This document shows positions 14,545 through 61,226 of a DNA stretch of 64,000 nt, piece by piece (positions within the stretch are counted from its first letter, which is position 1; each line of letters begins with the position of its first letter). The notes beneath the pieces were generated by a model. The model saw nothing but the letters and a program-made list of their open reading frames with translations, was not told where the DNA came from and searched no databases. The stretch is taken from assembly GCA_964035545.1 (NCBI GenBank), contig OZ037772.1:5810689-5874688 (forward strand). Reading direction: 5' to 3'. This DNA is from Bugula neritina (taxonomy: Eukaryota > Animalia > Bryozoa). The position numbers and the translations under genes were made by a program.

Positions 14545-17500
14545 TTACATGTTCGGAGTTGTCTCACCTCTCAAGAGAGCTGTCATCAAAATAATAACTG
14601 TAAAAAATCCTAGTACCATAGCCACTTCTAGAACTATGTAGACAATGTAGAACTTGTACTCTGCAACAAACATTTTATATTTAGTTCAATTTAAATAGTG
14701 AATCGCTTAAAGCAGCACTAAGTTGGTGATCACTGAGCCCAATGGTTTAGTAGTTTGGAGTTTGCACAATGGTGTATACAAATGCTGTACTCAGTCACCT
14801 CCAACTCAAGGCTGCTTTTATCAGTATTAAAAATACAGAACACGAACTAAGAATTACTATTTAAATTGACCTAAGGCTAATGATTTTTTTTCATTCTTTT
14901 TATTTCAAAATATTTAATAACAAGAAATCAAATATCAGTATGCAAATCTTCTGAAAATATATGAATAGGCTTAAATTTTTTTTCGGAATGCCTAACCATA
15001 ACAAAAAAATAGGTTAGTTTACATAAAATAAATAAATTTTGTAACTAAAGAGCTAGTTTTTATATGCTGTTTAAAATCATGATACTCAATTGATTAGATT
15101 TCACTCAGTTAGATTCAAATCTGAAAGTAGTTTTGATAAATCATTAGCGTTAATGAACGTTTTTTAGTTGTGTCAAATAATATCAGAAAGCTGCAAACAG
15201 CACACCTCTTTTGATAATATTCTTTGACGTAGACTGAGGAGCCTTATCTGAAATTGTCGGTACATCATTCGGACGATTCGAAGTTTGGCTTCTTGACAGA
15301 AGTGTCGGAGAACTCCTAGAGTTAGTAGTTAGTTCAGGCTGAGTTGTTTGACTGGTTTTGCTGTCTGAACCTGTGGTCTGAGCCACGGTTATAAATGGCT
15401 GGTAAATAATGGGAGTGAACGATGAGATGTTCCCATTTCCTACGTTTGTGTCATTATTTTCGATTTGCCATAGCACTGTGACGGTGTTTTGTGGGAAATC
15501 GTCATAGTCTATTGCAGAACATAATTTAACTTTTATATTAGAAATTCCACATAGTTTTCTTTTGATTTATGCCCACAACTGAGTTTTGATGCAAGACGTA
15601 CAACTACCCAATAGGCAAAACAGTCAAGTTATTAATATTATGTCAATTATGTTCTTAACTTTACTCAAGTTTTGCTTACGTATAATTATGTCAAAAAAAC
15701 AGAATATGGTAATTCCGTACTTTGCCAAAACAATTGCTACACACATAAAACTTTTTTTAAATAAAAAGGCTTGTGTTTTTTTGTACAAACACTTATCAAA
15801 GCACAAAAAACTAAAAAAACAATTGAAAAAAACTCAAAAATGCAATAAACTGCATCCACTATAATTTTATTGCCTTCCTAAGTTTCCCAAAGTGTTTGTG
15901 ATGTAATAAATAGCTTGTGCTCTCACCTTTTGCTCCCGAGGATTTGATTCCACAGTGTAGCTGTGAAACACCAGAACCGCTGTTGGCTGGGTCAAGGTTA
16001 TAAGCATTGCCAATGACCAGTTCCTTGTTAATGCCAATCCAGTAGTACTCAAAGTTTTGTGGAAAGAGATCAGAAAACATGTTGCATAAGAGTACTTGTC
16101 TTTCGGCATCTCGTCTGACGGTTAGTGTAGGCTTGTAACTGGCCGGGTAGGTGAAGTCTGCACAATACAACTTTTGATGAGAATAACAGCAGATGTTTGG
16201 CAGTAAATGTAGTGCCGCCATTACCCAGTAGCCCCTGTAGTGTAATAGTTAGAGAGCTTGCTTTCATGGAGAGGTCTACAGTTTATATCTCAGTAGGGCA
16301 AGTATTGTTTAAGCTATTTCGGCCTTTATTTAACTACTATAAGTGGTATTCTAAAAGAGTTAAAATGCCAGGGAGCATGAAGAGTGAAGAAGCAGTAGAG
16401 AGGTCAGTGGAGTTTAAAGAACCAGTAGCCCCTGTGGTGTAATAGTTGTTGCACCTGCTTGTAGGCAAAGGTCATGGGTTCAAATCCCAGTGGGGACAAT
16501 TATTTTTCAGTATTTGAGCTATCCAAAATTTTTAATCTTAAACATGTGAATAATAATATAATTGCACTTTTAATTCTTTTTTTATTATTTTACGCAATTT
16601 TTCAGAAAATTTTGAATTTAAAAGGCTGCAGAAAATTGAAAATAAAATTTATCCAAATGAACTTGAATACTTATTGATGGACAATCAACTAAATTTCATG
16701 TTAGGTCATCAAATTCTAGTTTATCGTAATTCATGACAATTGAAATTTATAAATATGACGCTTTTTCTTCTGTTGTTGAACAACAAATGGCTTAATGTTG
16801 CATTTGAGTTTTGAAAACTTTGATTTAACAGCAAAATTTACAAAATATCTAATCCTCTTATACAGATTGGCATTTAGGTTGTCTAAATTTTATTTATTTA
16901 AAATCAATCAAATGTTACAGTGGTTGCCCTAATTTATCACGTCACTACATAATTTCACATCTGCTAAGTTTTTAGTGATACATGTTTGTTGTTTTGTTAC
17001 GTATTTTGGTATATGTTTAAAATAATTTCAAAAGTCTTACAAATTGTAGGAGGAACTTCAAATGAATCTTCTAGCTGAAGTCCTTTGTTATTGGAACTTC
17101 GACACGTAACATTGAAACCTTGGCGATGTTTTTCCGAAGGAGAAAAATAGACTCTATTATTTGATTGGTTGTAGAGGGCCAGTGTTGCTTCTCCAGGCAC
17201 TTCAACGGCTAATAAAACAAATAGTTATTCTATGAATGATGAAGTACAGAAATTTATAAAGTCTTTGTTGAAAATTACCAGCATGACATGTGTAGCCTGT
17301 GTTCTAAACATTTATGTCAACTTAGTTATTACTATCAGTGCTGCTGAAGCAACATATCCTATAAATAGTCAATTTGATGAAACTTTGTATATACTAGTAT
17401 ACTACTATTATACTGGGTCATGTTATTATAAGTTTAGTACACATTAGCTAACTATGACAAAAACTTAAAGTTTGCTCAAATTTCATGAAAATGTAATAAC

Positions 17501-58800: not shown

Positions 58801-61226
58801 CTTCAGTTCAACAATTTTCGAAACAATTCAACATGAACTCTGAGTGATATCAGGTTTTGCTTTTGCAGATTTCAGTTCTCCCGGACAAGCTTTTCCTGTA
58901 ATAACTCTGCAGAAAAACACCGGGCTGCATAGACTCTACTGTAATATGTACTCGGAATCATTTCCAGTTCGCTTTCAGCACTACTGGATTGGCCTAAGGA
59001 AGGAGAAAGTTATTAACAACATGTACAGAGTAGACACTTCTCAAGCCAGCTCTAACGTATCTTATCTCACCTGTGGCATCCGGTTTCCAAATATTGAAGG
59101 TAATTGTCAGCAAGTGATAAATACTATTAACTTTTATTTATATAAGTTTGTTTAGCTGTAAAATTTGCCTAAGTGTTTGAGTGGTTTTGAAGTTAAATGC
59201 AACCACAATAAACTCTTCTTATTGAAGGTTTACGTGAAAACCTGAGCTTGAATGCAAGTATAAAAGCATTCTTGAGGTTTAATATCTGCTCAGAAGTTTG
59301 CATGAGGCTATTTATAGATATGAAATCATGTTCTATGTTATGAAACTAAAAATAAGTTGGTACTCAATATTCTAACAGAACTGGTTAACGAGATAGAGAT
59401 AGGAAATGAGCTATAGCCTAGTAAATGCTAGTATGCTAGGAAGAGCACAAAGATATGTACACTGTTCATCTGCCATTCTATTTTTCTCGTGATATAGGCT
59501 ACATTATTTTAAGATTTGTAATAACTCAAAGGGTGGTAACAGAAGAAAACAAAGATATTTACTTAGTTTTGTTGGATATAATTTATAGGAGAAGCGTCTG
59601 AGTTTTTGTAATCACTGTTAGTTATTTCTAGATTATGATGACTTTCCAAGGAATATAATAACCATCCTATGGGAAGAAGGACCACCTACCACTCCAACAA
59701 CAACTACACCAACAACTTCCACTACACCAACAACTACAACCACCACACCAACAACTACAACCACCACCTCAACAACTACAACAACACCAGCACCTGTCAC
59801 TACTCGACCGGCACCTGTAACTGCTAGGCCAGCTCCAGTCACTACTCAATCAACAGTCGCTACAGCAGGAAGCACAAAATACACATCAGTGAAATCTACA
59901 TTTCAAGGGCAAAGTCAACAACCATCTTTGGAGGAAGACAAATCTGCTCAGAAAAAAAGAACGGGTATATAACACATCTATTGCTATTCTATAGTTTGAC
60001 AACAGCATTCTGAATGCATGACAGAGAAACTTCAGCATTGTTCAAGCTTAGTACAGGCTAACAGTTACAACTTATACATGACATGCAATTGGTAATTTTC
60101 TGTAAATATCTACATATATGTTATGCTTAATATAAAGTAACACTAAATTGAATGAATTTTATTTGTAGGCCTCAGCACTCTCACATATGCGGTTCTTGCA
60201 GCTGCAGCTGTTCTGACAGTTGTGGCAGGTGCTTGCACTTTCTCAGAGTTGGGCTGTAAGTCAAACCATTGCATTATAAATTACATTATGCATTACCTTA
60301 TACTTGAAGTTATGCGTTGCCTTATAAATTACATTATGCATTACCTTATACTTGAAATTATGCATTACATTATAAATTACATTATGCATTACTTTATGCA
60401 TTTCATAATGCATTACATTATAGATTACATTATGCATTACTTTATACATTTCATAATGCATTACACTACATACAACATTATGCATTGAATAATTCATTGC
60501 ATTATATGTTACATTATGCATTACTTTGTGCATTGCATGGTGCATTGTGCCATATATTAGATTATCATTTACATTATTCAACAACTTAAGCATTATATTT
60601 TGCATTAATTTTTGCATTGCACTATGCATTAAACAGTAAAAATCTCTGAAAATAAACTGATCCAAAAAATGTTTGGCTTAGAAAGGCAGATAATAATGAG
60701 AATATTTTAAACTTTAAAAAGTTTTTTGTCTCATACAACATATTGTTTAAATTGTTATTATTGAAGCAAATTTTTATTGGAATACGTAAGCTTAGATTCA
60801 TGATTTCAATTATTTTGCATGACTCATCATTTACTAAAATTTCCCAGTGAGAAACCCATAATTGAAATGGTCTTCAAGACCAATTTAGATGTGGCACAGG
60901 AGCAATTATAACTGAATGCTCTTCCTAGCACCACTAATGGCCTTTGTTGGGTTTGAACTCATGACCTCGTGTTTACCAAGCAAACGCTCTGCTACCTATA
61001 AATCATATGGCTGCTAACTCAGCATTAACTATACAATCGCAGTATACCTATTAATATATCTATTCTAAAATTACACCATAAAACTTGGATACATGGTTTT
61101 TATTTATATTTTCTTCTTACGCAATCTTTTTTAGTCCTGCAGCTAGTACTGATGAAATATTTGAGTACTATATTATTACTTTTTTTTATTTTAGATATAA
61201 AAAAGAAACTCAACAATTGGCCGTAA
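55851..61226 (+). CDS. IgR3: type I membrane protein with three Ig-like domains, Thr/Pro mucin stalk, TM and ~10-aa tail (~495 aa)
   Basis: join(55851..55926,56074..56520,57425..57541,57883..58047,58869..59099,59632..59964,60169..60255,61195..61226); all phase 1; 1488 nt open. Signal MVLVRLFQFLLVFSIAVIYTATG; TM LTYAVLAAAAVLTVVAGACTF; tail YIKKKLNNWP*; AATAAA at ~61328. Confidence 0.85.
60270..60530. repeat. Minisatellite (ttacattatgcattac...) in IgR3 intron 7
   Basis: Repeated tataaattacattatgcattacctt units; source of the spurious NYIMHY ORFs. Confidence 0.8.
60845..61015 (-). mobile_element. SINE family 2 copy
   Basis: Reverse complement of family 2 in the last IgR3 intron. Confidence 0.6.

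Follow-up and report, generated by a model that had tools for sequence, protein, structure and literature searches.

What kind of receptor is encoded by the clustered immunoglobulin (Ig)-like genes of the colonial bryozoan Bugula neritina? The window, the whole 64,000-nt stretch of contig OZ037772.1 that was analysed, carries three paralogous genes, IgR1, IgR2 and IgR3, whose features lie within positions 14545-61226. An earlier note on this DNA had proposed them as candidate allorecognition or immune receptors. The best reading of our data is that they constitute an undescribed, lineage-restricted family of Ig-fold cell-surface proteins. On balance, the trio is probably a conserved family of adhesion or ligand-binding receptors under purifying selection and not a set of hyperpolymorphic self-markers.

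All-against-all comparison of stop-to-stop open reading frames (ORFs) recovered the D1, D2a, D2b, D3 and stalk-start exons in four copies each, and mapping of in-frame AG/GT splice sites placed phase-1 boundaries at every exon. The two approaches agree on four intact modules that follow one all-phase-1 exon plan, as the earlier note had claimed. Modules A and B belong to IgR1, module C to IgR2 and module D to IgR3. In the order A, B, C and D, the D1 exons measure 468, 456, 456 and 447 nt, the D2a exons 120, 117, 117 and 117 nt, and the D2b exons 168, 168, 162 and 165 nt; the D3 exon is 231 nt long in all four. The exon 3′ of D3 opens with D[YF]D.[FY]P.N..T..W in every module. The sole exception to the AG...GT pattern is IgR2 D2a, which has a GC donor (GATATG/gcaagt at 35402). 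Because the phase-1 donor of the module B linker lies only 268 bp upstream of the acceptor of module A D1, modules B and A were assigned to a single gene. When joined, the exons formed single clean frames of 865 amino acids (aa) for IgR1 (12 exons), 365 aa for IgR2 (6 exons) and 495 aa for IgR3 (8 exons), with 26 of 26 exons clean. The features of the family are listed below by coordinates and strand. In this list, omega is the ratio of nonsynonymous to synonymous divergence (dN/dS) between the window and contigs of a related lineage (L001, L002 and L005), AF2 is AlphaFold2, pLDDT is its predicted local distance difference test score, and TM denotes transmembrane.

24369..24462 (-): IgR1 putative signal-peptide exon; ATG 24462, phase-1 donor GGAA/gtaagt; joined frame clean; outside the orthologue contigs.
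23145..23600 (-): IgR1 module B D1, 456 nt, V-set Ig-like; AF2 pLDDT 79, V-set matches; orthologues in L001 and L002, omega 0.12.
22626..22742 (-): IgR1 module B D2a, 117 nt; weakly matched by Pfam Ig_3 (E 0.013); FCRL5 and Fc-gamma receptors matched by its profile; omega 0.13.
22000..22167 (-): IgR1 module B D2b, 168 nt; splice mapping; omega 0.23.
21518..21748 (-): IgR1 module B D3, 231 nt; counterpart in L001 is P0001.
20622..20774 (-): IgR1 module B linker, DFDNYPKNKITIIW plus S/T-rich stretch; phase-1 donor to module A D1; AG and GT kept in L001.
19886..20353 (-): IgR1 module A D1, 468 nt; splice mapping; omega 0.22.
18380..18499 (-): IgR1 module A D2a, 120 nt; splice mapping.
17041..17208 (-): IgR1 module A D2b, 168 nt; splice mapping.
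15927..16157 (-): IgR1 module A D3, 231 nt; splice mapping.
15206..15508 (-): IgR1 stalk exon, DYDDFPQNTVTVLW followed by 42% Ser/Thr/Pro; splice mapping, joined frame.
14545..14633 (-): IgR1 TM exon with 8-residue tail, ..LEVAMVLGFFTVIILMTALL RGETTPNM, stop; joined frame, predicted acceptor.
39291..39360 (-): IgR2 putative signal exon, MESRYISGLLVMALVHFCQTVFH; predicted ATG 39360.
37105..37560 (-): IgR2 D1, 456 nt; ORF comparison, splice mapping.
35402..35518 (-): IgR2 D2a, 117 nt; GC-AG intron donor.
34576..34737 (-): IgR2 D2b, 162 nt; splice mapping.
33957..34187 (-): IgR2 D3, 231 nt; splice mapping.
33323..33384 (-): IgR2 last exon, then stop; splice mapping, joined frame.
30750..31001 (-): fossil D1, interrupted by two in-frame stops and left over from a second IgR2 module; tblastn against the whole window, E 3e-4, 29% identity over 84 aa.
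55851..55926 (+): IgR3 signal-peptide exon; present in L005, where 9 nt are deleted in frame and the GT donor is retained.
56074..56520 (+): IgR3 D1, 447 nt; orthologue P0005 76% identical; omega 0.58.
57425..57541 (+): IgR3 D2a, 117 nt; omega 0.10.
57883..58047 (+): IgR3 D2b, 165 nt; omega 0.22.
58869..59099 (+): IgR3 D3, 231 nt; omega 0.14 over 63 shared codons; 5′ 13 codons deleted in L005.
59632..59964 (+): IgR3 stalk exon, DYDDFPRNIITILW followed by a Thr/Pro mucin-like stretch, 64% S/T/P; kept in L005.
60169..60255 (+): IgR3 TM exon, LSTLTYAVLAAAAVLTVVAGACTFSELG; omega 0.14 in L005.
61195..61226 (+): IgR3 terminal exon, IKKKLNNWP, stop; kept with its stop codon in L005.

A signal-type first exon was present for all three genes, and TM exons were present for IgR1 and IgR3. 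The earlier note had given a signal exon to IgR1 and IgR3 only; IgR2 also has a plausible one. The predicted IgR1 protein has two consecutive modules, followed by an S/T-rich stalk, a single TM helix and a tail of 8 residues. In IgR3, a single module precedes a Thr/Pro mucin-like stalk and a TM helix, and the tail is ~14 residues long. IgR2 has one module and then a stop; neither a stalk nor a TM segment was found 3′ of its last exon, and the protein would be a secreted (soluble) or decaying form. After the conserved motif, the stalks are 42-64% Ser/Thr/Pro (IgR1, 42%; IgR3, 64%), and each protein carries 2-11 N-glycosylation sequons. The tails, RGETTPNM in IgR1 and SELG.IKKKLNNWP in IgR3, are 8-14 residues long, lack tyrosine, and contain no immunoreceptor tyrosine-based inhibitory or activation motif (ITIM or ITAM). 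Because the tails have no signalling motif, signalling, if any, would need a partner chain. The TM helix of IgR3 carries no charge; in IgR1, a Glu marks the starting edge of the TM segment.

The membrane-distal domain, D1, has 108 residues between its outer cysteines; Cys25 and Cys134, the putative B-F pair, and Trp73, the putative core Trp, are invariant. From the first Cys to the Trp there are 45-47 residues, as opposed to ~14 in the usual Ig pin, and D1 therefore has a large insert at the position equivalent to complementarity-determining region 1 (CDR1). Neither V-set/Ig nor any other Pfam family matched the D1 exons at E values up to 1, and an ESM Atlas feature search with D1 returned no match. 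The AF2 model of D1, built on an alignment of six sequences, was all-beta with a pLDDT of 79 and a predicted TM-score (pTM) of 0.74. Most of the top 50 Foldseek matches to this model were V domains, though with E values of only ~1e-2, and the best Atlas shape match was a chordate V-set cluster (TM-score 0.56). According to the predicted fold, D1 is a membrane-distal V-set Ig domain, visible by fold and missed by sequence profiles.

The C-strand position of D2 is occupied by Tyr or Leu. A D2a profile matched FCRL5 (E 8.5e-4) and Fc-gamma receptors (E 0.06), and 28 of the 28 matches listed were Ig-domain receptors or other Ig-containing proteins. When single exons were searched against Pfam, the sole match was that of module B D2a to Ig_3 (E 0.013), under the curated cut-off. 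The D2b profile search matched nothing relevant; D2b carries G-F-x-V-x-C-x-N, which reads as a typical F-strand motif. We read D2 as a probable C2-type Ig domain that a phase-1 intron divides in two; its profile match is marginal and covers the first half.

D3 displays a Cys-Trp-Cys pattern with C-x14-W spacing. The model of the D3 exon alone was all-beta and placed Cys24, Trp39 and Cys68 on strands as in the Ig pin, but at a pLDDT of 53, and with the strand on the next exon left out, this model and its weak Ig-C and Fn3 matches are too poor to serve as evidence; no lectin was matched. The last (G) strand of D3 is probably encoded by the next exon, in the DYDDFP.N..T..W motif. An hhalign comparison of joined D2 with D3 plus the G strand found no similarity (probability 0.1%). 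We describe D3 as a predicted small all-beta domain with a Cys-Trp-Cys pattern and as a candidate Ig domain. The Cys and Trp spacing given for D1, D2 and D3 in the earlier note agrees with ours, and its three-Ig-domain architecture finds support in the V-set fold of D1 and the Fc-receptor-like match of D2a.

At the sequence level the family is, as far as our searches extended, an orphan, seen only in the host and a related lineage. Among 1.84 billion representatives, a D3 profile matched only a related-lineage ORF of 76 aa (P0001) and a spurious bacterial repeat protein (P0002). D1 searches matched only related-lineage fragments, and exact-sequence look-ups of the window ORFs found none on record. 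Two scans for D3 relatives in the metagenome_contigs collection were also negative, but a JGI contig (L005, below) does carry D3, and the collection evidently does not include the related-lineage contigs. These results agree with the earlier description of a clustered, lineage-specific Ig-receptor family without named kin. The family appears small, and our literature search found no paper on a bryozoan Ig-superfamily (IgSF) receptor family.

The related public sequences consisted only of short contigs of runs SRR4020080/81/83/84 and of Joint Genome Institute (JGI) metagenome 3300003318. L001 is collinear with window positions 24175-19576, L002 covers module B D1, and L005, from the JGI metagenome, spans all of IgR3 and retains its signal exon, stalk and terminal exon with the stop codon. 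Exons in the three contigs keep their length, frame and AG/GT sites, the sole exception being IgR3 D3 in L005. There, a 182-bp deletion (L005 2789-2815 versus window 58727-58908) has taken out the D3 acceptor along with 13 codons at the start of the exon; since a new phase-1 acceptor in frame is available there, the deletion may represent a natural A-strand truncation. The claim that D3 is exactly 231 nt accordingly holds in the window and fails in the related lineage.

The dN/dS values were 0.12 for module B D1, 0.22 for module A D1 and 0.58 for IgR3 D1. D2a gave 0.10-0.13, D2b 0.22-0.23 and the module B linker 0.35. D3 gave 0.67 in module B, from 18 changes only, and 0.14 in IgR3, as did the IgR3 TM exon. 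Across lineages dS was 0.2-0.5. Since length, frame and splice sites are kept and dN/dS is below 1, the IgR exons are constrained coding sequence rather than chance ORFs. Between orthologues, D1 replacements were 2.5-fold enriched in the Cys..Trp insert (33/138 versus 33/300, p = 8e-4).

The related contigs are 74-90% identical to the window, and the IgR introns 84-86%. In the same samples, a control intermediate-filament locus was 83-86% identical to the window. Because this control gene has diverged as much, the divergence is lineage-wide and at the species level; hyperdivergent alleles were rejected as the source of the related contigs. The collinear counterparts of IgR1 and IgR3 probably represent 1:1 orthologues from a related or sibling species. 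Among paralogues, D1 sequences are 22-30% identical. The label "fast-diverging", applied to the family in the earlier note, is apt for these old paralogues and inapt for orthologues and alleles.

Within the related lineage, two IgR1 haplotypes differed by 3-5% in introns and at 4 of 151 D1 residues (omega 0.12); the control locus differed by 1.8%. The IgR3 D1 protein did not differ among four samples, in which one synonymous difference was seen and flanking sites varied. In the source individual, DNA contigs over IgR1 matched the window exactly at a uniform depth of ~120-140x, with no second allele. In this small sample, IgR polymorphism appears low and far from that of hyperpolymorphic self-markers.

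In the mechanism that we propose for a conserved adhesion or ligand-binding family, IgR1 and IgR3 would be type I surface glycoproteins whose V-type binding domain stands off from the membrane. Binding, whether adhesive or to another ligand, would probably involve the D1 face with the fast-evolving insert. Several points weigh against this proposal. Expression and every splice junction of the genes are predictions from genomic DNA: no RNA run containing the locus was found, and the only run listed consisted of DNA contigs. The signal and TM exons of IgR1 and the whole of IgR2 are without orthologue support. The structure predictions covered single exons (D1 and D3). The polymorphism sample is tiny, comprising one source individual and two to four related-lineage haplotypes. 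The IgR3 D1 orthologue, with its omega of 0.58, has its changes clustered in two patches. Finally, the binding may be adhesive or directed at microbes.

Among known adhesion molecules, nectins, Necl/CADM proteins and PVR (V-C2-C2) resemble the IgR proteins in having a distal V domain, C2-type domains, a single TM segment, purifying selection and a plausible role in adhesion. The IgR proteins differ in the 45-47-residue D1 insert, the mucin-like stalk and, in IgR1, the repetition of the whole module. No homologue of the nectins or CADMs was found, and the IgR C-termini (..TPNM and ..NNWP) lack afadin-, PDZ- and 4.1-binding motifs. CD8-alpha-type V domains are likewise joined to the membrane by a Thr/Pro-rich stalk. 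By contrast with CD8-alpha, the IgR proteins have two more domains after D1 and no Lck-binding tail, share 9% sequence identity with it and occur in an invertebrate host.

The rival that survives best, although we consider it unlikely, is that the trio are immune or symbiosis receptors whose D1 would engage microbial or environmental ligands, perhaps together with neighbouring lectin-type genes, and which would signal via a partner chain. The neighbours of the cluster, secreted WSC-PAN and PAN plus F5/8-type-C-like genes, would suit such a role, but an unrelated intermediate-filament gene also lies inside it. The D1 insert changes fastest, and IgR3 D1 has an omega of 0.58 with its two clustered patches; the family is nonetheless small and not expanded. 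A possibly soluble IgR2 and the Glu at the start of the IgR1 TM segment are consistent with this rival, whereas the uncharged TM helix of IgR3, the lack of any signalling motif and the lack of an RNA run carrying the locus argue against it. Among vertebrate receptors, FCRL5 and the Fc-gamma receptors have an A-B strand consensus, P.P.L...FEG..v.L.C, that D2a matches, and the IgR genes likewise form a tandem family with short-tailed members. The similarity to the Fc-receptor, FCRL, LILR and KIR families is, however, marginal and limited to half a domain, and the distal IgR domain is V-set rather than C2. Unlike paired immune receptors, the IgR cluster has no ITIM-bearing partner gene and no basic TM residue for adaptor pairing, and we do not place it among them.

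It is improbable that D3 is a reduced C-type-lectin-like element, which would make the module Ig-Ig-lectin-like. The sole sequence match of the D3 profile in the PDB was to a P-selectin lectin domain, at its YYWIGIRK strand (E 0.9), and the language-model features of module A D3 led to clusters of Lectin_C (scores, 0.90 and 0.86). However, both leads share the same WIG motif, neither is significant (119 of 256 features in common), and D3 of IgR3 gave no usable match. In lectin domains, helices precede the WIGL strand, and the C-type-lectin-like domain (CTLD) has four conserved cysteines. D3 has two cysteines, no predicted helix and no match to Pfam Lectin_C, shares only the WIG motif with the CTLD, and in its exon-alone model was all-beta without a lectin match. 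Because only 14 residues separate Cys from Trp, D3 plus the motif of the next exon (~92 residues) is too short to accommodate the lectin helices.

Allorecognition, the function first suggested for the locus, would have a polymorphic D1 bind homophilically and in an allele-specific manner and thereby decide colony fusion or rejection. We regard this as highly improbable. The colonial host, the tandem family with a pseudo-exon, the V-type distal domain on a stalk and TM segment, and the fastest-evolving D1 insert, with an omega of 0.58 for D1 of IgR3, all recall such a system. The corresponding values of 0.12 and 0.22 for the two IgR1 copies of D1, the identity of the IgR3 D1 protein in four samples and the difference of only 4 in 151 residues between IgR1 D1 haplotypes are contrary to it. 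The source individual, moreover, is without variants over IgR1 at uniform full depth, the related lineage is as diverged here as at the housekeeping control locus, and only three genes were found.

The Hydractinia Alr complex provides the closest comparison: both loci are clusters of single-pass IgSF genes with pseudogenes in a colonial host, and both encode a profile-invisible distal V-set domain with more Ig-type domains after it and a beta domain next to the membrane (PMC9546547). Nevertheless, no sequence similarity between the two was found in Pfam, among the 1.84 billion representatives or in the D1 searches. The Cys-Trp-Cys pin is missing from domain 1 of Alr (PMC9546547), whereas IgR D1 keeps both Cys and a Trp. 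Alr further comprises 41 genes, many with ITAM- or ITIM-bearing tails, and its allelic diversity is extreme at Alr1 and Alr2 (PMC9546547). The IgR cluster has three genes, tiny tails and low diversity, and shows neither homology to Alr, nor a hyperpolymorphic domain 1, nor an ITAM or ITIM. Together, orthology, the three D1 omega values, low polymorphism and the absence of ITIM and ITAM motifs speak against the allorecognition and paired-receptor proposals. The earlier note had itself named orthology, low D1 diversity and purifying selection as findings that would count against its inference, and these are largely what we found, albeit in a small sample.

That the genes are silent or decaying relics without present function is most unlikely: the lack of an RNA run carrying the locus, the truncated IgR2 with its GC donor, weak acceptor and fossil module behind it, and the loss of the 5′ end of IgR3 D3 in the related lineage are outweighed by clean frames in 26 of 26 exons, by splice sites kept with omega at 0.10-0.23 in most exons over a dS of 0.2-0.5, and by the in-frame phase-1 acceptor that rescues the deleted D3 in L005.

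The detectable fossil is the decayed D1 at 31001-30750 (-), downstream of IgR2 and with two in-frame stops. A D2a-like ORF at 18037-18183 was rejected as an exon fossil because it lies in a high-copy repeat (depth ~15,000x versus ~130x) and is mostly a match to intron sequence. High-copy interspersed repeats occupy the IgR1 introns at 18000-18393, 19379-19575 and 20364-20560, where contig depth is 5,000-65,000x as against ~130x in exons.

According to exon mapping and Pfam searches with neighbouring ORFs, the window begins with WSC-PAN genes (0.1-13.5 kb, +) and IgR1 (14.5-24.5 kb, -), continues with a PAN plus F5/8-type-C-like gene (26.3-28 kb, +), IgR2 (33.3-39.4 kb, -) and an intermediate-filament gene (43-49 kb, -), and ends with IgR3 (55.8-61.2 kb, +) and another PAN exon (~62.7 kb, -). 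The small WSC-PAN genes (118-13500, +; Pfam WSC, E 7.6e-12, and PAN_1) stand in tandem and have been duplicated blockwise: in all-against-all ORF comparison, ORFs at 0.6-2.3 kb are 75-93% identical to those at 7.6-9.9 kb, and 3.1-5.6 kb matches 10.4-13.2 kb. The gene between IgR1 and IgR2 (26330-27980, +) combines a PAN/apple exon (PAN_1, E 1.3e-5) with one that is F5/8-type-C-like; a PWWRVDL motif in the latter may recall F-type lectins. In the intermediate-filament gene (43000-49200, -), the end of the rod matches Pfam Filament (E 1.4e-10), and a related contig has a weak lamin-tail match.

The DNA of the window is AT-rich (29-37% G+C) and contains (CA)n and (TA)n microsatellites. In introns and intergenic DNA, long (CA)n/(TG)n tracts at 27265-27700, 34290-34630, 50800-51250 and 56800-57400 give rise to spurious long Cys/Val or His/Thr ORFs. 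A transfer RNA (tRNA)-like sequence at 62998-63069 (+) is barely at the Rfam threshold (29 bits), with its repeat region at ~54016-54291 (+). A tRNA-derived repeat is suggested because the surroundings recur at ~54.1 kb (76% over 29 aa). No hammerhead family was listed when the entire window was scanned against Rfam at gathering thresholds.

The practical value of a small, conserved family without signalling tails is modest. If the trio were part of a bryozoan self/kin- or symbiont-recognition system, in which the D1 insert set specificity and diversity lay outside the sampled populations or paralogues, it would provide the first molecular entry point to the study of recognition in the phylum Bryozoa; we hold this to be scarcely likely. 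As a conserved family of probable adhesion or ligand-binding receptors, the IgR proteins are of interest for D1, a predicted V-set domain that is missed by sequence profiles, is seen by fold and carries a large insert at the CDR1-equivalent position. They add a data point to the question posed by Hydractinia Alr of how much invertebrate IgSF diversity current profiles miss.

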